Below are positions 968 to 34,815 of a DNA stretch of 64,000 bases, one piece after another (position 1 is the stretch's first letter; the number at the start of each line of letters is the position of its first letter). The position numbers and the translations under genes are program-made. The notes below the pieces were generated by a model that had not been told where the DNA came from, searched no databases, and saw only the letters and a list, made by a program, of their open reading frames with translations. Source of the stretch: Macrostomum lignano (lineage: Eukaryota). The stretch spans positions 248,001 through 312,000 of the forward strand of contig NIVC01000843.1 in the NCBI GenBank assembly GCA_002269645.1, written 5' to 3'.

Positions 968-3799
968 TCAGAGTCCATCGTTGACAATTTCTAAATATTC
1001 TGTTGCGTCGCTTTGAGGCCGATTGACCTCCGTCTGATCATGGGACGACGTTGGAAGCAGCACGGAATACGTGACGGTCTTTGATTCCTGTATAAAGTTT
1101 GGGTATTGCACTGCTGTTATGTATCATGCGCTAATTATTCCAGAGTAGAACTTACATCTGCAAAATATGTTGTAGTCGCTGCTCTTGCTAGCTTCGGTTC
1201 TTGCTGCGGTTGTAACATTTCGTGGTTCACAGTTGCTGAATTCTCTTCAGAGGTTGGACTGGTACCAGTAGTCACGAGCAGTTGTACTGGCAAATCCTGC
1301 TGCAAATCATGTTTTCAAGTTGACACGTTTAGCATCAATGATTGAAAGTTAAATGTGGCGCTTTCTTTAAGAAGATGTATACCTTTTTTAATCGCCAAAT
1401 GATATTTACGACAAAGCCGCCCAAAACAGTCAATATAACGACGCCCAGCACGATTGCAACAATGAACACCAACTTATGTCGTTCTGTCTCATTGCAAATC
1501 TTCATACTTTTATTCCGATGGACGCTCCACAAAACTTTCGATTCGTTGTACTGAATTGCTTCACAATTTACCGTCAATACATTGCTAACGCTGCAATTCG
1601 GGCACAGCCAAACTGATTTAAATGTGTACGCTTTTGTTTTACTAACGTTAGCGATTAAGACCAGTGAAATACTGTTATTTAGCGAGTCGGAAGCTGCGCA
1701 GCTGTGCTCAGGAGCCGGCTCAGAATGCCAGGACTCGAATAAAAATTGTTAAGTCAGCGAGCCGGATGTGAGGCATTGACCATCGCTAGTGTTTGCAGAG
1801 ATTTTCAAATTTTCAGGCGGATCTGATATTTAAAAGACAAGTTGCTATTCATCCGAAATAGGTTATTTACCAACACACGTCAGTAGATTTATCATTTATG
1901 AACTTACAAAATACTTGGAGATGTCTGCTCTTGATGTCAAGCGGTTGTCCACTAAAACTGCTGCTGCAAGTGTAATTCCCAGCATCTTCTGGTCGAGCTT
2001 TTTCAATCATTTTTGTAGCAGGATGAGTATTGTTTCCCGAGGCAAGAGTGCGCCTGCTTGCCCGAGTGCCGAAATGCTCCAGTGTGACCCTAGTATTCGA
2101 ATCTCTGGTGCATTGCACGCTACAGTTCACAGCAAGTGAATAATTTATTGTTACCGATTGAAGCGGGATTTTAACTGCAAAGAGCAAAATATGCTTCTTT
2201 TTTTAAAATCGTTGATATAGTCCACTAAAAATCGCTTTGCGATTACAAATAGTGACTGATTTATAACTTTTTTATTGGTTTAGATCGAGCCACTTATAAA
2301 ACAAACTCAAGACAGACTCATGGATGTTACAAAGTTACTTACTTTGGGTGTAGACTTGCTCAATCCACATGTTCTCAAAATTCATGCAATTTTTTTCATC
2401 ATCACCCTCACTGGTGGCTTTCTTTCGGAGCAGTAGCATTCGAACCTACCATGAAAGCAATGAGGTGAAGATAATAAAGAGGTTAATCGTAGAAGTTGGA
2501 TGGATGCCCTATATTTTTTAGATATGGCCATACTTTTAGACAACCAGACTTACTCACTTCCCTCAAAAATGATCAAAACTGATCTGTGGTCGAGCACTAT
2601 TGCAACCTAAATTCACTGCAAATGAAGCTAAGTCTATGTGATCTTGTTGCTTTTTCTGAATCACCCAACCGCTTGGTTATCCGGATAAAACCACAAATTG
2701 AGTGCAAAATTTGCACCTGAAGATGAAGGCTTACGTACCCCTGGCCTGACGCAATCGACAGTGAGGTTATCTGCCGAAGATACTTCTTGTGGAGTCTTGC
2801 CGCAGAAATCCCACGAGCGGTTCTCTGCTTGTTCAAAGTTAGCCAGTCTGTTCTTAGTATCGCAGTGGTTTTGTCCGAAGTTCATCCCGTCTGTCTTGGA
2901 TGTCCATATCTCAATTTCTGCTGCTCGAGGGTTTAATATGCCACTTTTGTCTTTCTCTTCCCCGGTATGCAGCTCTGACGTAGTTTGAATGAAATGAAAA
3001 CCAATTGTTAAAGTCAAATCAATACTTTGACGTAAGAATCACTTCGTTTTTAGTGTATCGGATGGCGCAATACATGCTACAATGAATGTACAAGCAATTG
3101 ACCAAGAATATTGAAAACTTTCTCTGAAACGCACACAGAACGACTGCTTACCGCAGTTGTGGAAACTTAAAAGGCAGGGCCTTACGGGTGTACCACGTGA
3201 AAATAGCTACAAAACTATAACAAATTATATTATTTGGTAATTTAAACTGTCACAAGGTGCACTTCACAAAACGAAAAGGTGAGTGCTTTACTGTGTCGAT
3301 TTTTTTTATTGTAATTGATCATCACAACTACATTAAACAAACTCGTAAAACTCTGCATAGGCTATAGTTAAAAAATGCATTGAAAATAAACTCACTTCTA
3401 GCAGTGATGGTGACTGAGCTGATCAGTTTCTGCTCCTTTAGCTTTATCACAAACCAATGAAATCCATTGTCCGTATAGTTCAAGCCAACTTTAGAATGTA
3501 AGAATCTGAAGTCATCTGTCTTAGTTGCTTGATTTTTAAAGCACGTTGACTCAGTATTTCTATCATAAAAACTTGAAGACTGCCACGAATCACCGACTGT
3601 GTCTCTGGTGATGTATTCTCTACCTAAAATTTTTAAACAGCAAAGCTACATGTAAACATGATAAAAGTTGTTTAACTCAAACGTACGGTTACTCTCCGAA
3701 AATGATATCATATAATTCACACTCACATGCTTTGAAGTCTCCTGTAGTTTGTCTTATAAAAATTCCCACAGAAAAGCAGATGGTTGCCAGAATATTCAT
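968..3799 (-). pseudogene. Receptor gene A: SP - F-type-lectin-like domain - Ig1 - Ig2 - TM - ITIM/ITSM tail, with an in-frame TAA at 1749-1751
   Basis: Eight GT-AG exons with consistent phases: 3799-3727 (MNILATICFSVGIFIRQTTGDFKA), 3623-3396 (SWQSSSFY...FHWFVIKL...ISSVTITAR), 2974-2739, 2445-2343 (VRMLLLRK...CMNFENMW), 2174-1908 (C...DAGNYTC Ig), 1822-1383 (YPP... Ig2+TM, one stop), 1296-1156, 1087-968 (VTYSVL...TEYLEI). Confidence 0.8.
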
Positions 3800-4807: not shown

Positions 4808-5118
4808 TAATAATAATAGACTATACCTGTCCCGATTGGGTCAGATGTTCAACTGACAGCCCAGCCGCAGCTATTGCGGTGCGGTGCATCTGAAGGCTGC
4901 GTACGGCTGTTCAGTCCAAGGACTGGGGGGTCACCACACACACCCTCAATTACCCCAGCTAATGCTGGCACCCATTTTACAGCTGGGTGAACTGAAGCAA
5001 TGCAGAGTTGTAAATGCCTTGCTCAAGAACACAATTTTTTTCTAGTGCATGGGATCGGGAATCAAACCCCTGACCTTCAAGTCGTAAGTCCGACGCTCTA
5101 ACCATTAGGCTATAGACT
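4808..5118 (-). mobile_element. tRNA-derived CORE-like SINE, near full length
   Basis: The minus strand begins with A-box-like tagcctaatggttagagc and B-box-like ggtttgattccc, followed by the CORE-like body and an AT-rich tail. Confidence 0.8.
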
Positions 5119-6255: not shown

Positions 6256-9200
6256 TTAGCCATTCTCAGCATCTATCAGAGGCCCATCAGATACAATCTC
6301 AATGTAATCGGTGCAGTCGCTGACAGGTCGCGTGCTCGCGCCCGACGTCTCTTGTAGAATATCAGCGTTGAATTTGCCATTAGCTTTAGGTACCAGGGCT
6401 GTATATATGCATTCAGTTTCGTTCTGAAGTGAAGAAAATACGCGTAAAAATCTGTGACCAGAAGCTGCCTCACGTGCAGTGAGTTAAGGTAGCTACGTGT
6501 TCTGCTGGTAATCACATACCCCGTACGCAGAGTTCAGTCGACTGTTGGAAGCCTGATCGAAACTCTCTGTAGATCGCGGAGGCTCTCGTGGTAGTGCTTC
6601 ATCAGCTTGATCTTGGGCTACAGCTGGCTTTGTTTCAACTTCCTGAGACTTTTGCGGTTGCACCTGAACTGCCGGCTTCTAAAGTTTATAAAATAATTTA
6701 AAACTTCTGTGTAAATTTCAGTACAAGATCGTTATAAGAAATTCATTGGAATTCACCTTTCTCATCTGGTAGATGATCGCTAGAGCAAGAATGCCCACCG
6801 CAACCACTGTCGATACGGTTAAGACGAATGCCAACCATAAGGGTTCTTTCTGCTGTTTCGAGCCAACCGACTTCGTCTCTGAATATTTTACAGTGTTCAG
6901 TGTGGCTAAAAATCTCAACTAAAAATCCTAAATAAGTATAAAAATACGAGTAATACTCTAGTCTATCCTTATTTTACCCAGATAGTTTTCCACTGACGTT
7001 AGATACTGTACTACACGTAGTCCCTGCTAAACGTGTCAACGATTTTTACATTACATTACATTACAGTATAATATTTCTCCAATGCGTATTTTAAGTCCGT
7101 CATGACTTGTGAGACGTAAAGGACTTGCGTACCACATCTAGATATTGAAAGAATTTCGGTGATGGTCGAATGCCAGGGCACTCCTGACTGAACAGCCGTG
7201 CAATTTATAGTTAAATTCGACAAGCCGATGGCTGTACAACAGTCATAGCAGGTCCAACTGGATTTTTTCACTGAACCGTTGTCAAAAGAGTTGTTCAATT
7301 CCTCGGCTGTGACAGCAACAGTGGCGTTAATTTCACTTGAAAAATTGCCATTCACAGAGCAGCTGTGATTCGCTACTGGCTCTGACTCGGATGACTTGAA
7401 CTCGAAAGTCAGCAGTTGGCTGGAAGAGTTGGTGTCGCAGTTGCTGGACTTGACTATCCCGATTGTAAGGTCCATCGGAGGATCTGAAATACGGTAGAGT
7501 CTTTTAATTATAAGAAGTCATAGTTTACCAAGAATATTAAGAGGGGCTAAAATAGTGATGCAACTAGTAAATGAATGATATAAAAGAAATCTTTAAAAAG
7601 TGGCTGCTCCGAGCTTGATGTAGTTAGCATACTGGAAGTTACGCAAATGTATTAGTTAAAATTAGAATTTCATGTTTATTTAGTACGTCTCAGATAATGC
7701 TCACTTCTTAAATTTGTTTCATACATTAAACATATAAACAGTCTTGAGCCTAATCCCTTTTAAGTGCATCAACTCACACAGCACGCGAAGATACTTAGAG
7801 CTCAACACGACACCACCTGCTCTGCAGGTGTAGTTTCCCGCATCTGATGGTTGCACATGCGAAATCTCATAAGCCTGGCTTCCGTTTGCAAGAGTTCGAT
7901 TCTCGTCGTCGCGAGTCAGAGTGATCAGTGAGGTATTTATTGAGCAGTTTGATAGGCAGCTCACTGTCACACTTGAGTTCTGTTTCACTTGTCCAATTGA
8001 AGATCCGTTCAATGTTTGAAAATCAGCTGGAGAGATCAGATATGATTAGCGGTACATTGGATGGGAACTATCTTAAGATTTTAATTTTATATAGCGACTC
8101 ACTTTGAACGCCATGGAGACCGATCCACATATCGACAAAGTTCATGCACTGCCTTTGTGGCACAGTTTCATTGGCGACATATTTTCGAAGTAGTATTATC
8201 CGAACCTAATAAATAATAATAAGTAATTAATTTAATATTTACACCCACCCCATTTGGGCCAGATGTGCAACCGACAGCTCAGCCGCAGCTATTTGCGCGG
8301 TGCATCTGAAGGCTGCGTACGGCTGTTCAGTCCAAGGACTGGGAAGTCGCTCACACAACCTCAATTACCCCAGCTAATGCTGGCACCCACTTTACAGCTG
8401 AAGCAATGCAGAGTTAAGGGTCTTGCTCAAGGACACAAATAGTTTCAGTGCGATCGGGAATCGAACCCCCAACCTTCCAGTCGAGAGTCTGATGCAAACC
8501 ACCAGGCTACCACCCCCTGTACCAAACTGAGAACTTAATAAATTCTAAAATATTCTATATTTTGCCTATAATTTGGTGGATAAAGTTGGATCATTTCTAC
8601 TCTATTTAAACTTCACGCAAAAAATCGTTACCTGATCCCTGATACAAGGAACTGTCAGTGTTTCTCCATGAGAAACATTTGTTGGCGTTTTGCCGCAAAA
8701 CTCCCATGTCCCGCTCTCTGCATTATCATACACAGAGCTGATGCTCTTTGAGTTGCAGTTCTCCGACCCGAAATCCAGGTCCGCCTGAGACGTCCAGATC
8801 TCAATGTCTGCGGCTCGAGCGTTTAAATCGTCTCCAAAATTCGTAAGTTCTGTCTCGCTTAAGCCTGTTAAAATTTATAAATTGATAAAATAAAAACGTT
8901 AAAAAGCCTGATTTGAAAGTTTATTCACAAATTTTGCAATTAGACTCACTTCTGACTTTGACATTCACAGAGCTGATCAGTTCAGGCTTCTTTAGCTTTA
9001 TCACAAACCAGTGAAATCCTGCATCGGCTCCCGCATCATTTCCGTTTTTGCCCTCCTCTGTGTGCAAATATAGGTAGCTGCCGACTTGGTCACCACCAAC
9101 GGGCCGCTTGTAAAAGCAATATGCCTGCCTATTATTATTCAAAATCGACGACTGCCAGGAGCTTTCAATGGAGCCTTTCCGAACTTCCATTTGGCCTGAA

Positions 9201-9690
9201 ATGTTGCAAATGTCACTTTAGACACGGCAAAACACGCATAGTATAGTAAGAGCCGCTCAGTGGTAAACTCGTCTGACTCTGTCGCCACATTCACATTCAT
9301 TTGGGGCTTGCTGACGAAGATTCAGACCCACAAGGGCCAACCCCCAAGGCACAGAGAGTGTACATGTCTGACGATTAGAAAGTCAGAGGACCGCTGTACA
9401 CCCTGTGGCAGCGTGTATGAGTGCTGTGTCTGCGTACAGAGTATTGGGGCACTTGTATGTGCTTAGGAGTCAGCATAATGTGCAAAATTGTCCTTGTGGG
9501 ACGATGTCACCGAAGGCGCTGCGACAGGGTTCCTACTGTCCTTGTTAATCGTATTATTGAAACAGTTTTAGACACCAAAACCACTGCAGCTTGTACACAT
9601 GTACTTACATCTTTGACAACTCACTGATCCAAGAAATGTTATGACCAATGCAGTCACCCAGATCCATGAGAACGATATAAGTCGATTCAT
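6256..9690 (-). CDS. Receptor gene B, apparently intact: SP - F-type-lectin-like - Ig1 - Ig2 - TM - ITSM tail
   Basis: Exons 9690-9609 (MNRLISFSWIWVTALVITFLGSVSCQR), 9195-8950, 8864-8632, 8205-8103, 8026-7778 (DAGNYTC), 7483-~7133, ~6905-6757 (TM LWLAFVLTVSTVVAVGILALAIIY), 6678-6520, 6423-6256 (CIYTAL...TDYIEI). Phases are consistent and no stops were seen. The exon 6 donor and exon 7 acceptor are less certain. Confidence 0.85.
8207..8516 (-). mobile_element. tRNA-derived SINE in intron 3 of gene B
   Basis: Head ggtggtagcctggtgg...ggttcgattccc; body matches the other copies. Confidence 0.8.
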
Positions 9691-10177
9691 ATTTAAATTC
9701 AACCCTAGCTGACAATGTTTTTCGAGTGATGCAGTTCCGAGAACTGAGTGAGAGAATATTAAATTGTTGTTATTTTCGTTCGGCAGCGCTTTTCTAGAAA
9801 TATTCGAAACCGTTTGAAACTGGTGCAACGTGTTCATTGATGAAATCAGTAAATTTAGTTGCCAATGCTTGCACAGATAGTAACTTTATTTATATATAAG
9901 TAGATTATAATTTATTAATTCCGGTCAAAAGCTAAAAATGACACTAAGAAGTATTGTGAAGGGCTGCAGACGGTAACTGTTAAAGATAACTTCAACTGCT
10001 ATTTAAAGTAAGCCTTACTAATTCTAGAAACCGCAAGCTTGCCATACTCGGCCGATTGGAAATAGCTTTATAGTTGTGCTTATTTGATTTCGTGTGATTT
10101 TACAGTTCTCAGAAAACTTGCCAAGCATTTTTAGAATTTTGCATTTAGTGAATTTTGCATTTAGTGCATTTTGCATT

Positions 10178-10358
10178 GGTGCTGGCGCCCCTTGGTGCTG
10201 GCGCCCCTTGGTGCTAAAGCCCCTTGGTGCTAAAGCCCCTTGGTGCTAAAGCCCCTTGGTGCTAAAGCCCCTTGGTGCTAAAGCCCCTTGGTGCTAAAGC
10301 CCCTTGGTGCTAAAGCCCCTTGGTGCTAAAGCCCCTTGGTGCTAAAGCCCCTTGGTGC
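10178..10358. repeat. 16-bp tandem repeat (GCTAAAGCCCCTTGGT), about 11 copies
   Basis: Read directly; the first units are gctggcgccccttggt variants. Confidence 0.95.
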
Positions 10359-10799
10359 TGCAACTACTATCTATGAGAGAACACGTTAAGTAAATTCACA
10401 CGCCAAAATTGCTTTGCTAAAACTTCCATCCAATCCTTCACAGACACAGATAACCAGAATAAACTTACTAAATCAAACAAATTATACTATTAATACCATT
10501 TTATAAAGTGAATCTTTAGTTATCAATAACATAAACCGACGGGCATCAAGTGACATTATTAAACAATCACAGATTTATCTTGATTTGGATTTTCAGCATC
10601 AATAAAAATCGTTTGAACACTGTAATTAGCTTGTAAACAAATTAGCTAAAATAAGAACTAGCAGAGATTTATTTGAAATAGCGTAATGAGATCAAGCAGT
10701 TTCTGTGGTGCAAAGCCGATGGAAATTTGCACTTGCTTATACGACCCATTTGACTTCTGCGGGAAAAGCAGTAAAATATTCTGCGGGAAAAGCGGAAAA

Positions 10800-11905
10800 A
10801 CACTTCGATGCCAGACACTTCAGTAACAGACACTTCAGTAACAGACACTTCAGTAGCAGACACATCAGTAGCAGACACTTCAGTAACAGACACTTCAGTA
10901 GCAGACACATCAGTAGCAGACACTTCAGTAACAGACACTTCAGTAACAGACACTTCAGTAGCAGACACTTAGGTGCCAGACATTTTGGTGACAGACATTT
11001 TGGTGACAGACATTTCAGTAACAGACACTTTAGTAACAAACACTTCAGTAACAGACACTTCAGTAACAGACACTTCAGTAACAGACACTTTGGTGCCAGA
11101 GACTTCGGTGCCAGACATTTCGATGCCAGACACTTCGGTGCCAGACATTTTGGTGACAGACACTTCAGTAACAGACACTTCAGTAACAGACACTTCAGTA
11201 ACAGACACTTCAGTAACAGACACTTCGGTGCCAGAGACTTCGGTGCCAGACACTTTAGTAACAGACACTTCGGTGCCAGAAATTTTGGTGACAGACACTT
11301 CAGTAACAGACATTTTGGTGACGGACACTTCAGTAACAGACACTTCGGTACCAGACACTTCAGTAACAGACACTTCAGTAAGCAGACACTTCAGTAACAG
11401 ACACTTCAGTAACAGACACTTCAGTAGCAGACACTTAGGTGCCAGACACTTCGGTGCCAGACATTTTGGTGACAGACACTTCAGTAACAGACATTTCGGT
11501 GCCAGACACTACGATGCCAGACACTTCAGTGCCAGATGCTTCGATGCCAGACACTTCGGTGCCAGAAATTTTGGTGACAGACACTTCAGTAACAGACATT
11601 TTGGTGACGGACACTTCAGTAACAGACACTTCGGTACCAGACACTTCAGTAACAGACACTTCAGTAACAGACACTTCAGTAGCAGACACTTCAGTAGCAG
11701 ACACTTCAGTAACAGACACTTCAGTAGCAGACACTTAGGTGCCAGACACTTCGGTGCCAGAAATTTTGGTGACAGACACTTCAGTAACAGACACTTCAGT
11801 AACAGACATTTCGGTGCCAGACACTTCGATGCCAGACACTTTGGTGCCAGACACTTCAGTAACAGACATTTCGGTGCCAGACACTTCGATGCCAGACACT
11901 TCGAT
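10800..11905. repeat. 15-bp minisatellite (CAGACACTTC + AGTAA/GGTGC/GATGC variants)
   Basis: Read directly; ends in gtcgagtcactttagaacc, as does the copy at 24.3 kb. Confidence 0.95.
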
Positions 11906-12133
11906 GTCGAGTCACTTTAGAACCTGCTGGTTGTAACTGGATACTACTCGTAAAAGGTGTTAGCCACTGCAGCTTAATTTACTTTGATACTTCTTGTTTT
12001 ATTGTAGAAATGGTATTGATGTGGATTAGCAATTATGAAATACGAGAAATTGCGTGATACACATGTACATTGAATGGTATACAATGTTTTGTTATACTGC
12101 TTTTCAAAGCTTAAGCAATGGTTCTATGAATAC

Positions 12134-12404: not shown

Positions 12405-14273
12405 CCTGAATTTTTTATCTTAATCAGCTTCAATTCCTAAATTTATATCCTAATAATCTATTGTTTTCGTATTCCCATGTAGCTTCCATGCAGAGTATCC
12501 GCAACAATATTTTTCAGTAGAAAGTCATTCTTCAACGTAGATATGAACCACCGGAAAGGCAGAAACGATTCGAATAAATAATATCAACTGAACCTATTTT
12601 TTCTTAATTATGCTACAAAGTAAAAAACCGAATCGTCATACTGAATTTTTTTACTAAATTTCCTTATTTCAACGATTTTTTATCTAGAATAAAACTGACT
12701 ATTCCAACGAAGAGATTTATTTTAGCACTTTAAGCGCTTGAGTCAATCGACAACAGATATAGGTTAGCAATCCATTGCCTTCATTTCTGCAGCTGCCTCT
12801 TCTGCTTCTGATGCCCTAATTTTTGATGACTTCGAGAATAAAGAGTGCTCGGCCTGGGGTCTGGAGATCAATAGAGGCATCAAGGGTTGTCAATGCAAAT
12901 CCGTTTACGTGAGGGCGCATCGAAGAGCAAGATTGCGGTGGCGCTGTGGATGGGCCGGCTGCGCCCTCATTCGGACCCAGTCTGACAAGCTTGGCAAGTT
13001 GTACTACCCGACGGGATCTGTTCAAGAGATCAATGGCCGTAGATGCAGATGTTTGAAGTCCCTGCTGATAAAATTACCTAGGGGTTACTATGCGTACACG
13101 TGGCACTGCTATAGTAATACTAGAGTAACATGAGTAACAGCTAGAGCTAGCTGACAGTGGATGTCAAATTGAAAGCGCGGCTTGTAGGCGAGCGCTGCTT
13201 TTAGTCAGATGACACAATTACACTGGCAAAGAGAGTAGAATCATCAAAAAATTACCTAGCTTAAGTCGATCCTCAGACGCAGTAAAATAATTTTAATTAA
13301 AATTGAGTCATTGCTTGTAAATCTAGTGTGCCCATCACCCCAATTTTGCCCCCCTGCGCCCCGCAACTGCTTTAATATTTATATTGTGCATCGTTTATTG
13401 TTAGCATCGTTAATGATTCATATATCGAAACTGAGACATCGTTAATTATAAAAAATCATCGGTCACTCAGTTTGGCCTCTCAAAGGACGTGACGGTTCTG
13501 TCGCTGTAAAATATCCCCTGAATTTGGGGGCATCTCTGTCAGCTTCAATACCCAATGTAGTTACGAAAATTATTTTAATATATAGTTAAATTTATGGGTA
13601 TTTTAATAGCTCTTATTTCATTGTCTCTGCAACAATATTTTTCAGCCGCAAGTAACTCCTGATCAGTGCAGTTCTGAGCACACTGGAAAGAAAAAAATGT
13701 GGCCCAAATCACAGCGTCAACTAGCTTTCCGAGCCAGTCCTAAGAGTATCAGGAAAAACGATCAAGAAAGAATATTAATTAATACAACGCAGTCCAATTC
13801 TGCTCCTGTCTGGATTTAATAGAAATATTTTTTTAAATAATTTTGCTGAAAAATTAACAAAAAACTCATGCTGAGAAATTATTTACTGAAATTGTTTTTT
13901 TCATTTAATTTCAGCATACACGCTCGTGAATAAGAAAGGCAAAAGATTGTAAGAAAGATATTTGTAATAGCTAAATATCCTCAAAGGCAGAGATGAAATT
14001 GAAATAATAAGACACAGGCAATATTGGAGAGGCCACGGGGAAGGCATTACAGCGAAAACAAGGCTTCGGTATGAAACAGCAAAAGTGTTTTAAATATTAA
14101 AATATTGTGAATAAAAATCATCTCCATGACAAAAAAACCCTCGAAATAAAACGTTCTGCCTCTTGTGTTGCACTACATATATTGCTACTGCAGTAGAATT
14201 TAACAGTAGCATATGCAGCAATTTTATTTACAGGTGCCACTTACTTAAAGGAAGGGGTGCCGATATTTGCTAG

Positions 14274-15135
14274 CTTGGTGGGTGCCGCTGTCTCTTGGTG
14301 GGCGCCCCTGTCTCTTGGTGGGCGCCCCGGTCTCTTGGTGGGCGCCATTGTCTCTTGGTGGGCGCCATTGTCTCTTGGTGGGCGCCCCTGTCTCTTGGTG
14401 GGCGCCATTGTCTCTTGGTGGGCGCCCCTGTCTCTTGGTGGGCGCCCCTGTCTCTTGGTGGGCGCCCCTGTCTCTTGGTGGGCGCCATTGTCTCTTGGTG
14501 GGCGCCATTGTCTCTTGGTGGGCGCCCCTGTCTCTTGGTAGGCGCCATTGTCTCTTGGTGAGCGCCCCTGTCTCTTGGTGGGCGCCATTGTCTCTTGGTG
14601 AGCGCTATTGTCTCTTGGTGGGCGCCCCTGTCTCTTGGTGGGTGCCCCTGTTTCTTGGTGGGCGCCATTGTCTCTTGGTGGGCGCCATTGTCTCTTGGTA
14701 GGCGCCCCTGTCTCTTGGTGGGTGCCCCTGTCTCTTGGTGGGTGCCCCTGTCCTATGGTGGGCGCCCCTGTCTTATGGTGGGCGCCCCTGTCTTTTAGAG
14801 GCGCCCTTGTCTTGTGGGGGCGCCCCTGTCTTATGGTGAGCGCCCCTGTCTCTTGGTGGGCGCCATTGTCTCTTGGTGAGCGCTATTGTCTCTTGGTGGG
14901 CGCCCCTGTCTCTTGGTGGGTGCCCCTGTTTCTTGGTGGGCGCCATTGTCTCTTGGTGGGCGCCATTGTCTCTTGGTAGGCGCCCCTGTCTCTTGGTGGG
15001 TGCCCCTGTCTCTTGGTGGGTGCCCCTGTCCTATGGTGGGCGCCCCTGTCTTATGGTGGGCGCCCCTGTCTTTTAGAGGCGCACTTGTCTTGTGGGGGCG
15101 CCCCTGTCTTATGGTGGGTGCCCCTGTCTCTTGAT
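14274..15135. repeat. 20-bp minisatellite (TGTCTCTTGGTGGGCGCCCC/CCAT) with a 278-bp higher-order duplication
   Basis: Read directly; identical ORF-track peptides start at 14595 and 14873, and at 14608 and 14886. Confidence 0.95.
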
Positions 15136-15317
15136 GGGCACCCTACCCTAAAGGTGCTAAGCACTCTGAATAAATTGTGCATGCTTGTTTTCGAAAATAT
15201 TTACAGAAGATACCATGTCTGCCAGTCAATTCATCCAACAACGCAGCTGCAGGGACCGACTCTATTCGATAGTGTAAATTTAGTGCATCGTAAGTCCTAA
15301 AGAAATACACAAAAAAG

Positions 15318-17022
15318 CTATTCATAAACGTAGACACTGCTTCTGTGCTCAGCAGGAGCTTCTACAGGGGCCTTGGCAGCGAGACCCAGTGGAGGCTCAA
15401 GCAGATCAACTCGTCTCTGAAATTCAAAACGTGTACAGAGAACCACTTTGCCAGCACTTTTCTGCAACGAGCATCATTAGAAGCAGTGATACCAAATACT
15501 TCTCTTGAGCAAATCTGCTGTTTCGGTTTTCACATTGTGATGGTCCCATAATCATGCGTCTATCCAGAAAGAAAATCTCACCTGAAGTACTACCTTAATT
15601 CTCAGTAGCGCTGTACATAGTGCAATGAGCGAGACAATAATTATCAAATTGAGTGTCCACTGAATCCAAATCATGAGTTGTTCCTTCTCAACCGAGCCTA
15701 AAGCTGAAATGTAGATTTGTGCTCAAAACTTGAGTTTCTACAGATTTCCGAGCGTAGTTAATTTGGGCTTACGTTTTCTAGGCCGGATTATTTGATAAAC
15801 ACTGGAGGCGAACAGTTCCGATTGTTTAGCTTCATCAAATTGCTTAGCTGAGCAATTCACAGCGAACCAATCCAAGCTGCAGCAGCTCTCGCACACCCAC
15901 TTTGATATCAGCCACTTTGATTGTAACTCCGTGTTACTTTGAAGCCTCTTCAGCATGGGACTCAGTGCATGACATTCGTGCCGAGGTGCTGGCACTGAGA
16001 AAGAGGACCTGAACGAAAGTGCCACATCTTTTCCTTGTTCTTTGATGCAAGCTTCATCTTCGACAGTGATTTCTTGTTCGACTGGGGGATCTGACGGATT
16101 CGTTTGTAGATGAAAAGTAAATTAGCTACAAAATATATTTCAACATATTGAACTTCCACACCAATGGTTAAACCAAATATACTTTCAAAAAGTTGCAATG
16201 CATTCCAAACTGACACCCAAAGTATTTTAAACTCATTTGTTAAGCCTGACTATGTGGTTTAGGACCTGATATTCTCAGAAGACACCACGTAGATTGTATG
16301 ATATTAATCTTAGATGGAGCAACCACAGAACGAGTCATTTATCATCTTCGACATATGTGTATTTCTATCTGTCTGTCATGGATTCATTGATAGAAATTTT
16401 CAAACCCTACTTTATTAAACATCAGTACTACATGTACGTACCTCTCTGCCAAAGCACATTGTACGTTGGATACCTTGACAATATTTTAAGGGATTCTTAA
16501 AATTTGCTGTTCAGAATAGCCCACAACAATTGAATGAAATATTTTTGTCTTTGAGTTGTTATTAAATAAGTCAAATAGGAACATTACACAACTCACACAG
16601 CACACGAAGATACTTGGAGCTCAACACGACACCACCTGCTCTGCAGATGTAGTTTCCCGCATCCGATGGTTGCACATGCGAAATCTCATAAGCCTGGCTT
16701 CCGTTTGCAAGAGTTCGATTCTCGTCGTCGCGAGTCAGAGTGATCAGTGAGGTATTTATTGAGCAGTTTGATTGGCAGCTCACTGTCACACTTGAGTTCT
16801 GTTTCACTTCTCCAATTGAAGCTTCGTTTGAAGTTTGAAAAACAGCTGGAGAGATCAGATACGAATAGCGGTACAATGGATGGGAAATATAACTTAAAAT
16901 TTGAATTTTAGCGACTTACTTTTGACGCCATGGAGGCCAATCCACATATCGACAAAGTTCATGCACTGCCTTTGTGGCACAGTTTCATTAGCGACATATT
17001 TTCGAAGTAGTAATATCCGAAC
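15318..17022 (-). pseudogene. Receptor locus C: 3' half (exon 4, Ig1, Ig2, TM, partial tail) cut off from intact 5' exons
   Basis: Exons 17022-16920 (103 nt), 16845-16597 (Ig1, nearly identical to B), 16090-15773 (YPPVEQ...KWVCESC), 15703-15594 (TM IWIQWTLNLIIIVSLIALCTALL), and 15416 onwards (RRVDLLEPP...SSVY). The terminal exon is unresolved. Confidence 0.75.
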
Positions 17023-17065
17023 CTGATAAATAATAATAAGTAATTAATTAAATATTTACACCTAC

Positions 17066-20000
17066 TGTTGGGGTTGTACTTTGGTTTTTCATGTTGTTTC
17101 ACTGTCTCTCTCTCTCTCTCTCCCTCCCGTGACTGATCATTCTTGCGCGCTATCGTTTTACCCCTACCTGTGTACATTTGTGCTTGCCAGTGTGCATGGT
17201 TTTAACCCCCAGCCAATCGGATGGCGTTTGTCTACTAATGTACGTGGTTTCGTGTTTTGTAGTCAAATAAATCAAAGTAACTTTCGTCACTTCGGTAGAG
17301 ATCTTTCAATGGTATTCTCCTTCGCTTGCAAACATGACTTGACTCAGTTTTTGCCTAGACTAACATTTTGGCGTCGCGAGCAGGATCATGAGCATCAAAT
17401 TGAGAGAGACGCTGCCGTTAAGCAACATAGATGAGCTTCGCGCCTGGGTTGAAGTATTTGACGCCCAGGCCAGATCCAAAGGAGTCGAAGATACCGACGA
17501 GAGACGAGCGCTGACCGACGCTTTCATGGGCTGCCTCGGGGTCGCTGAGCTTATAAAAGTCAAGCAGCTGGTTGTTCCAAAAACCCCGTCTGCGATGAAA
17601 TGGTCTGAAATCAAGCAATGCCTACTGGCGTTTGTGGAGCCCAAGAAGAAACTGCAGATCGCTGAGAGGACAGTCTTCATGTCTATGCGCCAGGCCGAAG
17701 GCGAAACCGTCACCAGCTATGCCGCTCGTCTCAGGGAGCAAGCCGTCGTATGCGAGTTCGAGAGCCTGAAAAAGGAAGGAGCGGACCCCGCCGAAGCGCT
17801 CATCAAGATGCGGCTCATTGCCGGTCTGGCCAACTCGAACATCAGGAACAAGGTGCTCGAACGTGAAGTGACTCAAGAACTGACGGTCGATCAGGTCACA
17901 GAATATGTTCAGCAGCTACTGATGGTCAGCAGCTTCTCAGCTGGGTCCCTGGCTGCTGCTCATTCGACTCTCGTGGATTCGGTGGTGCACCAGGCTAGGT
18001 CGCTGTCGACCGCGGGTCTGACTACGGCTGATGAAGCTCACTGCCATCCGGATAGCTCCGGCTCTGTCAACGTTAATTCGGTTATGAGGCAGAAGCAGAA
18101 CTTCGGACACCAGCGCTGTCAGCGTTGCGGGTTGAGATCGCACCAGAAGCCCGCTGACTGCCGAGCCCTGAGAGCCACCTGCAATCAATGTGGAAAGCCT
18201 GGCCACTTTGCCCGTGTGTGCCGCGGTGCCAGGACCCACTTCGCTGCCCCAGCTGAAGCAGTCGGCACTCAGCTGAGTCCAGAAGACTCCTATCGTGATG
18301 AGCCCGTATTCTACTGTGGAGAAGGAAAGCCTGCCGAGTTCTGCACTGTGAAAATCAATCACAGAGAAGTACTGATGGAGAAGGACATCGGTGCCTCCTG
18401 CTCGTTAATCTCACGAAGGATCTGGAATGAGCTCGGAAGGCCCCCGCTGAAGTCGGCGAAGTCGCGCATGCTGGCGTATGACGGACACGTTATGAGACAG
18501 ATGGGCGTTCTGGAATGCCTGGTGGAGACCACTGGCAACAACGGCCGCTTCAAGGCGGCAGAGCTGCCCGTCATCGACTGCCAACAGGAGTTTGGGCTGC
18601 TCGGCCGGAATCTGCTGGTCCTCGCACCGGTGCACCATGCCAGTTCTGATGAGTCAGCCGCCAGCAACAGGTATGAGAGCTTGTTGGGAATATCTGGTGC
18701 TACGGGAGAAATCCGTCTTTGTGCTGGAGCTAGGTCAATTTTCCAGGCAGCCAGAGAACTGCCCTTAGCGCTGAAGCACTTGGTTAAGAAGGAGCTGGAA
18801 CTGATGGAAAGTGCTGGAATCGTTGAGAAGGTGATGTCGTCGGAATGGGGCAGTCCAATTGTGGTGACGGTGAAGTCAGATCGGGCATCCGTGAGAATTT
18901 GTGGAGATTATTCGGCTGTTAATCGGTTGGTTCAAGACCAGACCTTCCTCACTCCCTCGATTGAGACAGCCTTTTCGAAAATGGCCAACAAGAAGCTGTT
19001 CTGTCGGTTGGACCTATCGGATGCGTACTATCAGGTTCCCCTGGATGAGGAATCGAAGGCGGTGACCACCATAAACACTCCGTTTGGTTGCTACAGGTTT
19101 AACCGGTTGCCGTACGGCATTAAGGTGTCGCCATCTGTTTTTAAACGTGTGATGGAAAAGCTCCTGGGAGACCATCCATGTGTCATAGTATATCAGGACG
19201 ATGTGCTGATCGGTGCTGCAAGCCGGGCAGAGTTGCAGAAAATTAGGGAGCAGGTGCTCAACAAGTTAAAGGCCGCAAATGTCAAGATCAACGAAGCGAA
19301 TTGCGTGATGGAAGCCAACAGCCTGAAGTTTCTTGGTCACATTATTGATGATGAAGGAATAAAACCCGATCCGGGCATGGTGAAACGTGTGATGGATGTC
19401 GAGGTGCCGAAGACCAAGAAAGATTTGGAGAGATTTCTAGGACTGGCTCAATTTTATGGACGGCTGGTTCCAAACTTTTCTGAGAAATGTCGGCCTCTTC
19501 AGGAGCTTCGCCGCGGTGACCGGGTCTTTAAATGGAACGCGGTGGCTGAGGCGGCATTTTCGGAGGTCAAAAGGAGTCTGGCCTCAAACCCGTGCATCAA
19601 GCCGTTTGATGTTTCCGCGCCTGTCTGTCTTCGAGTTGATGCGAGCGAGAAGTCCTTGGGCGCGGTGCTGGTCCAGTCTGGACATCCCGTCATGTTCATG
19701 TCCAGGGCGCTCTCACAGGCAGAAACCAATTACTCAAACATCGAGAGAGAAGCGCTGGCTATTGTTTGGGCGGTTGAACGAGCTCGGAAAATGTTGCTAG
19801 GGAAGAAATTCATTCTGCAGACCGATCACGAGCCTTTGAAGTTTATTCTGAATCCTTGCAAGAATCTTCCAAAGACTGTTTCTGCCAGACTAACCCGGTG
19901 GGCTCTGCGGCTATCGGCTTATGATTACGAGATTGAATATGTGCCGGGAAAGAAGATGCAGGATGCTGACGCTCTATCAAGGCTGAGCTTTGAAAACCTC

Positions 20001-21644
20001 GATCCTGAGACGGAGTCTGTTCACCAGACTGAGTTGATCACTGACGGAGGCTTGGTTACCGTGGAGGAGCTGAGAGAAAGTACTTCCCGGTGTTCACTGC
20101 TTCAAAGACTCCAGCAGAGAATCAGGACAGGCCGGTGGGGTCAGGTCTCTCAGCTGGAGCGGCCGTACAAAGCGTGTCGGGAAGCGTTGTCTGTGGAGAA
20201 CGGGCTGGTCATCCACGGTACCAGGGTGGTGCTTCCGACCATTCTCCGGCGGCGCATTTTGGAGACCGCGCATGATGAGGTGCACCCGAGCGCGGAAAAT
20301 ACGAAGGCCCATGTGTCTAAGGAGTTCTGGTGGCCTGGACTGGATCGCGATGTCCGTCAGTTTGTTGAGCGGTGTCAGCTGTGCGCTGAAAGACGGCCGG
20401 TGGTTCAGCGGAAAATTGACATCTGGCCATCCGAGAGCGAGCCGTGGTCCCGGGTCCACATGGACCACTGTGAGGTGCCAGGAGTGGGCTTGCTGCTTTT
20501 GCTGTCTGATGCATACTCGGGTTGGCCCGAAGCTGTCCAGGTCCCAGACAGGTCTGCGGGCAGTGTGCTGAGAGTGCTGAGAGCGGTGTTCGCCAGAAAT
20601 GAAGTGCCTCGGACGCTAGTGTCGGATAATGCGCCTGAGTTCAGGTCGGAAGGAGTCTCGCAGTGGCTGAACAGTGTCGGGCTGCCAGGAGATGCACACC
20701 CCACCGTACCATCCGGCATCGAACGGGCAGGCTGAGCGGTTGGTGAGGAGTCTCAAAGGCGGGCTGAAGACGTGGACGAAAGTGGTCCCATTTGACCAGT
20801 TCCTGCAGAAATTGCTCCTAACCATTCGCACCAGCAGGCCTAGCGGGAATCGATCCAGCTCGCCGGACATTCTCATGTGGGGACGCCGGCTGCGCCATCC
20901 GCTGACGATGACCGAGCAGGTGGGTGACTCCATCTGGCTGAGGGCTCGGCCTGGCACGGCTCCGGTTCCGGCCAAGTTCATCGTGCAGCACGGCCGGAAC
21001 ACAGCTCTGGTGACCTCAGCTGACCTACCAGACGGTGGACTGCGGATGGCGCACGCAAACCAATGGAGCTGCCGCCCGGAGGCGGAGACCGATCGGCGGC
21101 TGACCGAGGCGGCTGGATCCGAGGATCAGGCTGGGCTATCGATTCAGGGTGCCAAGGCTGGCTCTGACTCGGAGCTGCGTGAACCTGAGGTGACTGACTG
21201 TGACTCCCCGCTGAGTTCTGGAGATGAGACTCTCGAGCCCCACAGCTCGTATGATTTGCGGCCTCGTAAACCTGTTTGTTATAAGGTCTAAGGACAGGTC
21301 TTGCTTTCTTTTGTTTTTTGTTTTTCTGCTTTTGGAGGGAGCAGTGTTGGGGTTGTACTTTGGTTTTTCATGTTGTTTCACTGTCTCTCTCTATCTCTCT
21401 CCCTCCCGTGACTGATCATTCTTGCGCGCTATCGTTTTACCCCTACCTGTGTACATTTGTGCTTGCCAGTGTGCATGGTTTTAACCCCCAGCCAATCGGA
21501 TGGCGTTTGTCTACTAATGTACGTGGTTTCGTGTTATGTAGTCAAATAAATCGAAGTAACTTTCGTCACTTCGGTAGAGATCTTTCAATGGTATTCTCCT
21601 TCGCTTGCAAACATGACTTGACTCAGTTTTTGCCTAGACTAACA
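17066..21644 (+). mobile_element. Full-length Ty3/Gypsy LTR retrotransposon (Mag-like, single ORF)
   Basis: LTRs 17066-17365 and 21345-21644 (300 bp, TG...CA, about 3 differences seen). TSD CCTAC at 17061-17065 and 21645-21649. PBS tggcgtcgcgagcagga (tRNA-Ser-like). PPT ggagggagcag. Confidence 0.97.
17388..21291 (+). CDS. gag-pol: Gag-Pol polyprotein with one frameshift in integrase (~20680)
   Basis: CCHC knuckle CNQCGKPGHFARVC, protease DIGAS, RT YQDD, RNase H DAS/EREALA/TDH, integrase HHCC plus MDH/SDNAPEF. The SNGQAER tail is in the next frame (ORF 20674-21291). Confidence 0.95.
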
Positions 21645-21649
21645 CCTAC

Positions 21650-21919
21650 CCCATTTGGGCCAGATGTGCAACCGACAGCTCAGCCGCAGCTATTTGCGCG
21701 GTGCATCTGAAGGCTGCGTACGGCTGTTCAGTCCAAGGACTGGGGAGTCGCTCACACAACCTCAATTACCCCAGCTAATGCTGGCACCCATTTTACAGCT
21801 GAAGCAATACAGAGTTTGGTGTCTTTTCTCGGGATCACAAATAGTTCCAGTGCGATCGGGAATCGAAACCCGGACCTTCCAGTCGAGAGTCTGACGCAAA
21901 CCACCAGGCTACCACCCCC
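21650..21919 (-). mobile_element. SINE at the position orthologous to gene B intron 3; the Gypsy element is inserted in its tail
   Basis: Same flanks as the 8207-8516 copy (ccctgtaccaaactgagaac); its AT tail lies left of the Gypsy element at ~17030-17060. Confidence 0.8.
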
Positions 21920-21976
21920 TGTACCAAACTGAGAACTTAATAAATTCTAAATTATTCTATATTTTGCCTATAATTT

Positions 21977-23014
21977 GCTAAAGCCCCTTGGTGCTAAAGC
22001 CCCTTGGTGCTAAAGCCCCTTGGTGCTAAAGCCCCTTGGTGCTAAAGCCCCTTGGTGCTAAAGCCCCTTGGTGCTAAAGCCCCTTGGTGCTAAAGCCCCT
22101 TGGTGCTAAAGCCCCTTGGTGCTAAAGCCCCTTGGTGCTAAAGCCCCTTGGTGCTAAAGCCCCTTGGTGCTAAAGCCCCTTGGTGCTAAAGCCCCTTGGT
22201 GCTAAAGCCCCTTGGTGCTAAAGCCCCTTGGTGCTAAAGCCCCTTGGTGCTAAAGCCCCTTGGTGCTAAAGCCCCTTGGTGCTAAAGCCCCTTGGTGCTA
22301 AAGCCCCTTGGTGCTAAAGCCCCTTGGTGCTAAAGCCCCTTGGTGCTAAAGCCCCTTGGTGCTAAAGCCCCTTGGTGCTAAAGCCCCTTGGTGCTAAAGC
22401 CCCTTGGTGCTAAAGCCCCTTGGTGCTAAAGCCCCTTGGTGCTAAAGCCCCTTGGTGCTAAAGCCCCTTGGTGCTAAAGCCCCTTGGTGCTAAAGCCCCT
22501 TGGTGCTAAAGCCCCTTGTTGCTAAAGCCCCTTGGTGCTAAAGCCCCTTGGTGCTAAAGCCCCTTGGTGCTAAAGCCCCTTGGTGCTAAAGCCCCTTGGT
22601 GCTAAAGCCCCTTGGTGCTAAAGCCCCTTGGTGCTAAAGCCCCTTGGTGCTAAAGCCCCTTGGTGCTAAAGCCCCTTGGTGCTAAAGCCCCTTGGTGCTA
22701 AAGCCCCTTGGTGCTAAAGCCCCTTGGTGCTAAAGCCCCTTGGTGCTAAAGCCCCTTGGTGCTAAAGCCCCTTGGTGCTAAAGCCCCTTGGTGCTAAAGC
22801 CCCTTGGTGCTAAAGCCCCTTGGTGCTAAAGCCCCTTGGTGCTAAAGCCCCTTGGTGCTAAAGCCCCTTGGTGCTAAAGCCCCTTGGTGCTAAAGCCCCT
22901 TGGTGCTAAAGCCCCTTGGTGCTAAAGCCCCTTGGTGCTAAAGCCCCTTGGTGCTAAAGCCCCTTGGTGCTAAAGCCCCTTGGTGCTAAAGCCCCTTGGT
23001 GCTAAAGCCCCTTG
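21977..23014. repeat. 16-bp tandem array (GCTAAAGCCCCTTGGT), about 65 copies, nearly homogeneous
   Basis: Read directly; one variant unit near 22518. Confidence 0.97.
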
Positions 23015-23631
23015 CAACTGCTATCTATGAGAGAACACGTTTAGTAAATTAACACACCAAAATTGCTTTGCTAAACTTCCATCCAATCTTACGCAGACAC
23101 AGATAACCAGAATAAACTTACTAAATCAAACAAATTATACTATTAATACCATCTTGTAAAGTTAATCTTTAGTTATAAATAACATAAACCGACGGGCATT
23201 AAGTGACCATTATTAAACAATGAGAGATTTATCTTGATTTGGATTTTCAGCATCAATACAAATACAAAGACTGTACAACATTTGCACTTGGCCATATTTG
23301 ACTTCGTTTTTCTACGTTTTTCTTTCTTTCTTAGAAGGGCTAGCTTAAATAAGCTTCATACAAGCTTCAAGCTGTAATCATTATTGGAGTCCACTTGTTG
23401 CTGGCTATACTTTCACGCACTGTTGTTTCTCCAAGTCCTTGGTAACTCAACCAGCAGTTAGACCTCCTAAGGATTACTGGATTAGTTACCTTTGGTTTTA
23501 AGTAGAGCTGTAAGAACTAATTAGGATAAACGAGGCACAAATAACGGTATTGCTACAACTATAATCCGTTACATGCATAATTTCACACTGATACAATAGA
23601 AACTCGTATAAGTATAGAAGAATACAAGACG

Positions 23632-24312
23632 CTTCGGTGACAGACACTTCGATGCCAGACACTTCGGTGCCAGACACTTCGGTGCCAGACACTTCGATGC
23701 CAGACACTTCGATGCCTGACACTTCGATGCCAGACACTTCGATGCCAGACACTTCGATGCCAGACACTTCGATGCCAGACACTTTGGTGCCAGACACTTC
23801 GATGCCAGACACTTCGATGCCAGACACTTCGATGCCAGACACTTCGATGCCAGACACTTCGATGCCAGACACTTCGATGCCAGACACTTCGGTGCCAGAC
23901 ACTTCGATGCCAGACACTTTAGTCCCAGACACTTCGATGCCAGACACTTCGGTGCCAGACACTTCGGTGCCAGACACTTCGATGCCAGACACTTCGATGC
24001 CTGACACTTCGATGCCAGACACTTCGATGCCAGACACTTCGATGCCAGACACTTCGATGCCAGACACTTTGGTGCCAGACACTTCGATGCCAGACACTTC
24101 GATGCCAGACACTTCGATGCCAGACACTTCGATGCCAGACACTTCGATGCCAGACACTTCGATGCCAGACACTTCGGTGCCAGACACTTCGATGCCAGAC
24201 ACTTTAGTCCCAGACACTTCGATGCCAGACACTTTAGTCCCAGACACTTCGGTGCCAGACACTTCGATGCCAGATACTTCGGTGCCAGACACTTCGGTGC
24301 CAGACACTGCGG
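23632..24312. repeat. 15-bp minisatellite, GATGC-dominated variant
   Basis: Read directly; same right flank as the 10800-11905 array. Confidence 0.95.
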
Positions 24313-25638
24313 TGTCGAGTCACTTTAGAACCTGCTGGTTGTAACTGGATACTACTCGTAAAAGGTGTTAGCCACTGCAGCTTAATTTACTTTGATGCTT
24401 CTTGTTTTATTGTACAAATGGTATTGATGTGGATTAGCAATTATGCAATTCGAGAAATTGCGTGATACACATGTACATTGAATGGTTTTGTTATACTGCT
24501 TTTCAAAGCTTAAGCAATGGTTCTATGAATACTCAGTAAATAAGAGAAATCGCCCACACTTTTAACTTGAAAAGTGTTCTTTCGGAGAATAAAAATGCAA
24601 CAAAAATTATGCGCCAATATTAATATCAGTATAACGCCAAATATTCTATAATTATTTAACATTAAAAGGAGACCATCATGGACGTGTCTGGCTTCATAAG
24701 TAGAAGTCCTGTTCAGCCTACTAGCTAATGGGTGTAATCTATCGAATTCATATAAGATTCAGACATTATCGACCGGGTTTGATTCCATCTTGCTGTAAAA
24801 TGCCCCTGAATTTTTTATCTTAATCAGCTTCAATTCCTAAATTTATATCCTAATAATCTATTGTTTTCGTATTCCCATGTAGCTTCCATGCAGAGTATCC
24901 GCAACAATATTTTTCAGTAGAAAGTTATTCTTCAACGTAGATATGAACCACTGGAAAGGCAGAAACGATTCGAATAAATAATATCAACTGAACCTATTTT
25001 TTCTTAATTATGCTACAAAGTAAAAAACCGAATCGTCATACTGAATTTTTTTACTAAATTTCCTTATTTCAACGATTTTTTACCTAGAATAAAACTGACT
25101 TTTCCAACGAAGAGAAAAGATTTATTTTAGCACTTTAAGCGCTTGAGTCAATCGACAACAGATATAGGTTAGCAATCCATTGCCTTCATTTCTGCAGCTG
25201 CCTCTTCTGCTTCTGAAGCCCTAATTTTTGATGACTTCGAGAATAAAGAGTGCTCGGCCTGGGGTCTGGAGATCAATAGAGGCATCAAGGGTTGTCAATG
25301 CAAATCCGTTTACGTGAGGGCGCATCGAAGAGCAAGATTGCGGTGGCGCTGTGGATGGGCCGGCTGCGCCCTCATTCGGACCCAGTCTGACAAGCTTGGC
25401 AAGTTGTACTACCCGACGGGATCTGTTCAAGAGATCAATGGCCGTAGATGCAGATGTTTGAAGTCCCTGCTGATAAAATTACCTAGGGGTTACTATGCGT
25501 ACACGTGGCACTGCTATGGTAATGCTAGAGTAACATGAGTAACAGCTAGAGCTAGCTGACAGTGGATGTCAAATTGAAAGCGCGGCTTGTAGGCGAGCGC
25601 TGGAAGTATAACTTGAAATTTGAACTTTTGCGACTTAC

Positions 25639-34337: not shown

Positions 34338-34624
34338 GTAGCCATGACAACCAATAGGACTGACAACGTTTCGCCGCCTCGGTCAGTTTACGTTAGCGAT
34401 TGAGGAAGCGCTTGATTCTGTATTCGGCAATAACTATAAGTAACTATATGGAGCGTAACTATTTGGAGCTAACGTCGCCAGAGAATCATCGTGACCATTT
34501 TAAACACGAATATATTCTCGCTCCATCTCAATAACTTGATAACTCGTAAAAACATATCCAGGATTTCGAAATTATAAATTATAGAATGGTCATCAAATAA
34601 AACCAAGAGCTGTGAACTATGGTT

Positions 34625-34815
34625 GATTATAAATTATTATATTTTCATATTAAATTTGGTTCGGGTTTTGGTACTGGGTTCGGATATTGGTACAGGATTT
34701 TGGTTTTGATACTGGATTTGGGTTTTGGAACTGGGTTTGGGTTTAGTACCGGGTTTGGGTTTTGGCCCCGGGTTCGATGTTCGAGGTAGGTGGGATGCTT
34801 GGTTCAGGTTCGGCG
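34625..34815. repeat. Degenerate ~18-bp tandem repeat (GGGTTCGG/GGTTTTGGTAC-rich)
   Basis: Recurrent ggttttggtactgggttc-like units; inverted copy at ~43920-44110. Confidence 0.55.

Follow-up and report, generated by a model that had tools for sequence, protein, structure and literature searches.

A tandem cluster of putative receptor genes

The DNA analysed here (the window, 64,000 nucleotides long) comes from the free-living flatworm Macrostomum lignano (contig NIVC01000843.1 of assembly GCA_002269645.1; window position 1 corresponds to contig position 248001) and holds a group of genes whose predicted cytoplasmic tails carry a pair of tyrosine motifs resembling the inhibitory and the switch type of immunoreceptor tyrosine-based motif (ITIM and ITSM, respectively). 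An earlier note, made from the letters of the DNA and without database searches, had attributed these motifs to an invertebrate receptor, which agrees with the host. Split genes, microsatellites and retroelements are the eukaryotic traits of the window; an Rfam scan gave no match. Searches with exon peptides (tblastn) located six related loci, termed A to F, and the window is best explained as a tandem cluster of lineage-restricted genes for predicted type-I membrane receptors of M. lignano. Their putative common plan, likewise the best explanation of the exon content, comprises a signal peptide, an N-terminal domain rich in beta structure and spread over three exons, a stalk rich in Cys, one transmembrane (TM) helix and a cytoplasmic tail, with an immunoglobulin (Ig) domain behind the N-terminal domain in A, B, C and E only.

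Gene models were built by hand, and all introns are of the GT-AG type with consistent phases (Table 1). A conserved 103-nt exon (VR[M/I][L/I]LLRK...QCMNF.[N/D]MW), detected in all genes by tblastx between introns, resolves a phase conflict after the second exon of the N-terminal domain; weak alternative donors, or a splice-site defect in B and C, were dropped as explanations. In A, B, D and F a basic stretch precedes the phase-0 end of the TM exon, and the tail exon begins in phase 0 behind a pyrimidine-rich ...cag acceptor. The splicing of the last exons to the TM exons, on which the earlier note depended, is in frame in the models, and the junction between the cytoplasmic and tail exons recurs in a nearly identical copy in UniProt. 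This copy (A0A1I8J6J1, M. lignano, E 2.5e-14) was the single match of a four-tail profile in an exhaustive HMMER search of 1.84 billion representative proteins. It is a 108-aa fragment corresponding to the penultimate and last exons of gene B, contains the predicted junction ...NSAYG/NETEC..., and is identical to gene B at 105 of 108 positions (97%), the three changes being conservative and both CIYTAL and TEYIEI being kept. A profile of the N-terminal domain matched UniProt A0A1I8G0L0, annotated as "Ig-like domain-containing protein", which is 97% identical to gene E and confirms its Ig-to-TM junction. Word-index protein searches with the concatenated gene B and with the four-gene alignment gave no match, a weak negative, since the 97% identical A0A1I8J6J1 was missed as well. 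AATAAA or ATTAAA lies downstream of genes B and D only and is uninformative.

The loci differ in their integrity. The stalk exon of gene A contains an in-frame TAA (~1751-1753) within a 12-nt insertion relative to B; this gene is therefore a probable pseudogene, or else its product is probably truncated. Removal of the stop through a short internal intron was rejected, since such an intron is either out of frame or dependent on weak sites whose use would cost conserved Cys residues. Locus C has an 8-nt frameshifting deletion in the first exon of the N-terminal domain (~26450), two copies of the third such exon (25626-25782, frameshifted, and 16950-17023, intact) and a stalk unlike that of B. 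A motif-bearing tail exon was sought for C and E: none was found, and for locus C no tail exon was found at all. The cytoplasmic tail of gene E, identified via A0A1I8G0L0, reads AIGSHQTLERKLATVR-HSTEKVSNEEPP... and has neither tyrosine motif.

One hydrophobic helix and an N-terminal signal peptide are predicted per protein, K/R residues follow the TM helix, and the tails hold 0-1 N-glycosylation sequons compared with 14-17 in the A and B ectodomains. These features predict a single-pass type-I protein with its tail in the cytoplasm. The putative Ig exon of A and B has no counterpart in D and F. Analyzed alone, it matches Pfam Ig_3 in B (31.6 bits, cut-off 30, E 2e-7) and ig in A (23.8 bits, cut-off 21.8, E 6e-5); with full-length gene B the Ig score is 26.8 bits and falls under the Pfam cut-off. 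The N-terminal domain gave faint matches to F5_F8_type_C and F5_F8_type_C_2 (PF00754/PF22633; E 0.07-0.19, 13-14 bits against cut-offs of ~28); all are below the Pfam thresholds and leave the domain unassigned. A profile search of PDB sequences with this domain returned nothing significant. The spacing of its conserved W-Q-S-S, H-W-F, R-A-A and Cys residues, which we take to be reminiscent of an F5/8 type C or galactose-binding-like fold, offers a lead only. The predicted TM helix of gene D (exon 33936-34021, plus strand) holds a Glu residue, FWLLGVLLTEIIVLIILISLAILIYY; this recalls adaptor-pairing receptors, yet D also has a tyrosine-bearing tail.

Table 1. Positions of the receptor genes, their tyrosine motifs and associated elements in the window
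Feature	Position	Strand	Remarks
Gene A	968-3799	-	8 exons, 536 codons, one in-frame TAA
Gene A exons	3727-3799 (signal peptide), 3396-3623, 2739-2974, 2343-2445 (N-terminal domain), 1908-2174 (Ig), 1383-1822 (stalk and TM), 1156-1299, 968-1087	-	
Gene A last exon	968-1087	-	39 codons and TGA, ESKTVTYSVLLPTSSHDQTEVNRPQSDATEYLEIVNDGL before the stop; acceptor ctttatacag/GAATCA, phase 0
Gene A motif 1	1058-1075	-	VTYSVL, sole canonical ITIM of the cluster
Gene A motif 2 block	974-1021	-	RPQSDATEYLEIVNDG; ITSM core TEYLEI at 986-1003
Gene B	6256-9690	-	9 exons, intact open reading frame of 579 aa
Gene B exons	9609-9690, 8950-9195, 8632-8864, 8103-8205, 7778-8026 (Ig), 7133-7483, 6757-6905 (TM), 6520-6678, 6256-6423 (tail)	-	
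Gene B motif 1	6394-6411	-	CIYTAL; Cys at -2, outside the ITIM consensus
Gene B motif 2 block	6283-6330	-	RPVSDCTDYIEIVSDG; ITSM TDYIEI at 6295-6312
Locus C	15603-26825	-	B-like pseudogene
Gene D	29366-42207	+	7 exons, intact open reading frame of 379 aa; without Ig exon and without middle cytoplasmic exon
Gene D exons	29366-29438, 29528-29761, 29867-30078, 30195-30297, 33539-33850 (stalk), 33936-34021 (TM), 42088-42207 (tail)	+	
Gene D motifs	42100-42201	+	CTYASL at 42100-42117; RPESEVTEYLMIIKDG at 42154-42201, ITSM TEYLMI at 42172-42189
Gene D last exon, inverted copy	36526-36645	-	100% identical
Gene E	46500-49685	-	N-terminal domain, Ig exon 48497-48739, TM exon 48242-48376
Gene F	51929-55145	-	8 exons, intact open reading frame of 446 aa; without Ig exon
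Gene F exons	55073-55145, 54762-54995, 54445-54656, 54228-54330, 53751-54056 (stalk), 53572-53657 (TM), 53286-53474, 51929-52066 (tail)	-	
Gene F motifs	51950-52054	-	CCYDTV at 52037-52054; RVNSDATEYLEIISDG at 51950-51997, ITSM TEYLEI at 51962-51979
Long terminal repeat (LTR) retrotransposon	17066-21644	+	300-nt LTRs, 99% identical; within an intron of pseudogene C

Paired tyrosine motifs in the predicted cytoplasmic tails

An ITIM has the form [S/I/V/L]xYxx[I/V/L] and an ITSM the form TxYxx[V/I]. The interval 968-1087, in which both had been reported for gene A, coincides exactly with the last exon of this gene including its stop codon; the minus-strand translation of 968-1090 reads QESKTVTYSVLLPTSSHDQTEVNRPQSDATEYLEIVNDGL before the stop, and the peptide ends in DGL and not in DG. 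The tails of B (NETECIYTALVP...RPVSDCTDYIEIVSDGPLIDAENG and stop) and F (ITSECCYDTVNP...RVNSDATEYLEIISDGIEQQSE and stop) are likewise read from the minus strand, and a pattern scan added a fourth tail that the earlier note lacked, that of gene D (EGNSCTYASLMP...RPESEVTEYLMIIKDGI and stop, 42088-42207, plus strand; whole peptide EGNSCTYASLMPSTAEPNSNEQRPESEVTEYLMIIKDGI). The order of the motifs is the same in all four tails: a YxxL/V motif is N-terminal and the ITSM is second, with Tyr-Tyr distances of 24 (A), 33 (B), 24 (D) and 25 (F) residues. The first block follows the consensus [C/V]xYxx[L/V]xP and its tyrosine (Tyr1) is residue 7 of the last exon in every case, while the second block, R[P/V]xS[D/E]xT[E/D]Y[L/I][E/M]I[V/I]xDG around Tyr2, lies close to the C-terminus. 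All four genes match the ITSM consensus, with TEYLEI in A and F, TDYIEI in B and TEYLMI in D, so that the conservation claimed for B and F holds and extends to the first tyrosine motif as well. The description of gene A as carrying a canonical ITIM and ITSM stands as far as VTYSVL and TEYLEI are concerned, both of which fit, and has to be qualified by the in-frame TAA of this gene. The ancestral form of the first motif is likely CxYxx[L/V]xP. A third cytoplasmic tyrosine is found by the last splice junction, at the end of the penultimate exon, in A (TTTYFAD/, ~1156-1175) and B (NSAYG/NE, ~6520-6540); in B it forms a YxN spanning the junction, which is a Grb2-type pattern, and it is not kept in D or F.

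The overall identity of the four proteins is 26-33%, and MAFFT found nothing to align in the cytoplasmic regions except the two tyrosine blocks, in agreement with the statement that the sequence between the motifs is unalignable. Across both blocks the residues Y, P, R, S, T, Y, I, D and G are invariant. When one tail was shuffled with its composition preserved, 0.04-0.12% of the trials yielded an ITIM and a subsequent ITSM, and the six invariant columns observed around Tyr2 compare with at most two in 20,000 shuffles. Within the 16 codons of the second block, the proportion of synonymous differences (pS) is 0.64-0.86, i.e. saturated, and that of nonsynonymous differences (pN) is 0.19-0.35. 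Synonymous codons vary even at conserved residues, namely Thr (ACA/ACC/ACG), Tyr (TAT/TAC), Gly (GGA/GGG/GGT) and Pro (CCA/CCT/CCC). Saturated synonymous sites next to constrained replacement sites imply that selection acts on the protein, and the retention of the motif despite this saturation implies that the constraint has lasted long. Long-term purifying selection on the peptide of the module is thus supported; the earlier note had proposed that selection preserves SH2-phosphatase docking. Recent gene conversion as the cause of the likeness of the second blocks is ruled out by the saturated synonymous differences.

Genes D (plus strand) and F (minus strand), which are oriented convergently, are mosaics. 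Identity is 95-97% for the exons of the N-terminal domain and 86% for the stalk but only 52-60% for the signal-peptide, TM and tail exons, a pattern that points to gene conversion or to an exchange of ectodomain blocks between receptors whose tails differ.

Candidate readers of the tyrosine module

The best-fitting mechanism, which we propose tentatively and with somewhat less than even confidence, is that a SHP-2-type phosphatase would dock to the module in bidentate fashion through its tandem SH2 domains. The 24-33-residue range is the Tyr-Tyr spacing of PD-1, BTLA, SIRP-alpha and PECAM-1, which bind SHP-2 via both SH2 domains. Upon ligand engagement, a Src-type kinase would phosphorylate both tail tyrosines and the doubly phosphorylated tail would then bind, at both sites, a protein that has two SH2 domains and is most probably a phosphatase of the SHP-2/corkscrew type. 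A, B, D and F would then be inhibitory or modulatory receptors, and E, with a tail that lacks tyrosine motifs, could be their non-inhibitory counterpart. From the motifs and their arrangement we infer that the tail is phosphorylated, which SH2 protein binds it and that the signal is inhibitory. The transcripts listed for M. lignano include a PTPN11 homologue (PMC5946080), and another flatworm, Schistosoma mansoni, has Src, Syk and Csk kinases (PMC3135232).

Several observations weigh against docking of a SHP-2-type phosphatase. In B, D and F, three genes out of four, position -2 of the first motif is Cys and not S/I/V/L, and the canonical ITIM is confined to gene A with its premature stop. Conservation of the second block spans -8 to +7 around Tyr2, with R, S, D and G invariant; this exceeds the need of a simple SH2 site and may indicate a different or additional partner. 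The YLEI of Tyr2 also resembles the optimum of Src-family SH2 domains, and each motif conforms to the sorting signal YxxPhi. The ratio pN/pS in the ectodomains of recent duplicates is high (0.45-1.0 for B/C and 0.66 for D/F), which fits either fast evolution or relaxed constraint. No relatives outside M. lignano appeared in the tail-profile, N-terminal-domain-profile or word-index protein searches, and support for expression consists of two fragmentary UniProt gene models. The gene calls of the contig, in the collection that was searched, do not include this family and give only a retrotransposon open reading frame (ORF) within the 23 kb around that ORF; together with the database results, this means that the receptor family is barely annotated.

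The tyrosines might instead be docks for another reader, such as Src-family or Csk SH2 domains, a SAP-like single-SH2 adaptor or Syk, and the signal might be activating or context-dependent. We consider this rather unlikely. The optimum of Src-family SH2 domains is pYEEI, with which the Tyr2 sequence Y-L/I-E/M-I shares the E at +2 and the I at +3; acidic residues at -4 and -1 occur as in sites that resemble half of an immunoreceptor tyrosine-based activation motif (ITAM), termed hemITAM-like. The ITSM definition itself, with its "switch" reading, implies alternative partners, and the kinases concerned occur in flatworms (PMC3135232). On the other hand, tyrosines 24-33 residues apart exceed the spacing of a classical Syk-bridged ITAM (YxxL/I-x6-12-YxxL/I), and the Thr at -2 and the paired arrangement better match the ITIM/ITSM pattern. 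An ITAM proper is ruled out by the spacing, as 20-29 residues separate the four-residue motifs where 6-12 are needed.

It is quite improbable that the cluster is decaying or silent and that the motifs are relics of a past function. Such a fate is suggested by the in-frame stop of A, the frameshifted and retrotransposon-interrupted locus C, a pN/pS of about 1 between B and C in one exon, the last exon of D, which is separated from its TM exon by 8 kb of repeats and duplicated in inverted orientation, and the lone reverse-transcriptase ORF that the gene calls of the contig place in the surrounding 23 kb. Nevertheless, the ORFs of B, D and F, which are assembled from 7-9 exons with canonical splice sites and encode 379-579 aa, are intact, the motif has been kept despite saturated synonymous sites, and a second copy of B elsewhere (97% identical) has undergone conservative changes only and retains both motifs.

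Still more doubtful is the possibility that both YxxPhi motifs are sorting or endocytosis signals read by the mu subunits of clathrin adaptors and play no part in signalling. All of the tetrapeptides (YSVL, YTAL, YASL and YDTV; YLEI, YIEI and YLMI) fit YxxPhi, a pattern that does not discriminate, and they lie in the predicted cytoplasmic tail. But YxxPhi requires neither the Thr at -2 and the Pro at +5 nor the invariant R at -8, S at -5, D at +6 and G at +7, and paired signals at a conserved spacing are atypical of sorting motifs. A match by chance is effectively refuted: the loose regular expression for an ITIM has 346 matches in the six-frame translation of the window, but the shuffling results and the fixed place of Tyr1 in the last exon of four genes speak against coincidence.

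If the module does dock a SHP-2-type phosphatase, it is a lineage-restricted variant of a known signalling principle. Vertebrate receptors with an ITIM and an ITSM, including PD-1, BTLA, SIRP-alpha, PECAM-1 and the CD33-related Siglecs, are likewise type-I proteins with a YxxL/V motif followed by a C-terminal TxYxx[V/I], and the TEY core and the YASL core of gene D agree letter for letter with those of BTLA and CD33. In contrast to them, the flatworm proteins show no detectable homology, have an N-terminal ectodomain without an assigned family (and in D and F no Ig domain), mostly carry Cys at -2 of the first motif (3/4 genes) and possess a much longer block around Tyr2 (R-x-x-S-D-x-T-E-Y-L-E-I-V-x-D-G). 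Among invertebrates, FcoR of Botryllus and Alr of Hydractinia are multigene receptor clusters with ITIM- or ITAM-type tails (PMC12582321). Similar to these, the flatworm genes form a tandem, rapidly evolving and copy-variable cluster of type-I receptors with tyrosine motifs in some members only, and ectodomain exons appear to be exchanged between members with different tails (D and F). They differ in belonging to Platyhelminthes, in an unrelated ectodomain and in having the ITSM-type second motif as the invariant element. ITIM-bearing receptors of the immunoglobulin superfamily (IgSF), LILRB-like and Siglec-like, have been reviewed for oysters (PMC11999971). These are lophotrochozoan IgSF membrane proteins with cytoplasmic ITIM-type motifs, as the flatworm receptors are predicted to be, but the mollusc receptors were named by similarity to vertebrate families, unlike the flatworm family with no detectable relatives outside M. 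lignano. Homology of the flatworm genes to the Botryllus and Hydractinia clusters or to the oyster receptors was likewise not detected.

A more far-reaching and unlikely proposal is that the cluster constitutes a flatworm-specific paired-receptor system in which exchanged, fast-evolving ectodomains would be combined either with a PD-1/SIRP-alpha-like bidentate SHP-2 module (A, B, D and F) or with a tyrosine-free tail (E). If true, such a system could function in the recognition of self and non-self, of microbes or of mates and sperm, and would be the first inhibitory-receptor system described in Platyhelminthes. The ITIM-ITSM arrangement with a spacing of ~25 residues would then either predate the protostome-deuterostome split or have converged under the geometry of a tandem SH2 phosphatase. 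Inhibitory receptors with tyrosine motifs are central to vertebrate immune checkpoints and have recently been tied to allorecognition in Botryllus and Hydractinia. No account of such receptors in flatworms turned up in our literature searches, and a 2025 review states that work on platyhelminth IgSF has gone little beyond identification (PMC11999971). M. lignano is amenable to RNA interference and transgenesis, which makes the origin of bidentate SHP-2 docking (ancient or convergent) testable, and the same animal, which lacks adaptive immunity, could reveal what such receptors sense. Predictions made from motifs in this way are frequent for invertebrate genomes, and the present one is drawn from sequence.

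Repeats and other elements of the window

Both copies of the last exon of gene D are carried by a perfect inverted repeat of 2991 nt (34188-37178 / 41555-44545); the last intron of this gene is 8 kb long and contains repeats. Direct repeats that are 98-100% identical flank the inverted repeat, and 39994-41764 equals 44552-46324. This arrangement reflects a repeat-mediated rearrangement of very recent date or else an artefact of long-read assembly. The LTR retrotransposon in locus C looks young; its Gag-Pol ORF (17388-20735) is intact and encodes 1115 aa with RVT_1, RNase H and integrase domains. Contig NIVC01000843.1 has this ORF on record with exactly the same sequence, and 9348 bases of the contig around it equal 14388-23735 of the window.

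Two further ORFs lie beyond gene F. At 61676-64000 (minus strand) an AT-rich ORF of 775 codons (G+C content ~35%) runs off the end of the window. With Pfam matches to PriCT_2 (3e-12) and D5_N (1e-11) and a faint one to DUF5906/Prim-Pol, it is a predicted primase-helicase of the D5 type found in large DNA viruses or Polinton-like elements; at the 3' end the ORF passes into a (CAGA)n-like array encoding (RQTD)n. At 57833-59671 (plus strand) a reverse-transcriptase-like ORF of 612 aa with a G+C content of 58-63% points to a non-LTR or Penelope-like element. It is not recorded as a called gene and is flanked by long CT-rich microsatellites at 56.9-57.3 kb and 60.5-61.3 kb.

Minisatellite arrays with a period of 14-20 nt occupy intergenic and intronic space of the cluster at 10036-11917, 14201-15142, 21832-24319 and 30949-32730, and the arrays at 30949-31228 and 32325-32691 are mutually inverted. 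A dispersed repeat resembling a short interspersed element, with the core ...caagacacttaactctgcattgcttcagttcacccagctgtaaaatgggtgccagc..., occurs in both orientations at ~404-700, 4849-5105, 8300-8420 and 25757-25850, one copy being located inside an intron of gene B.

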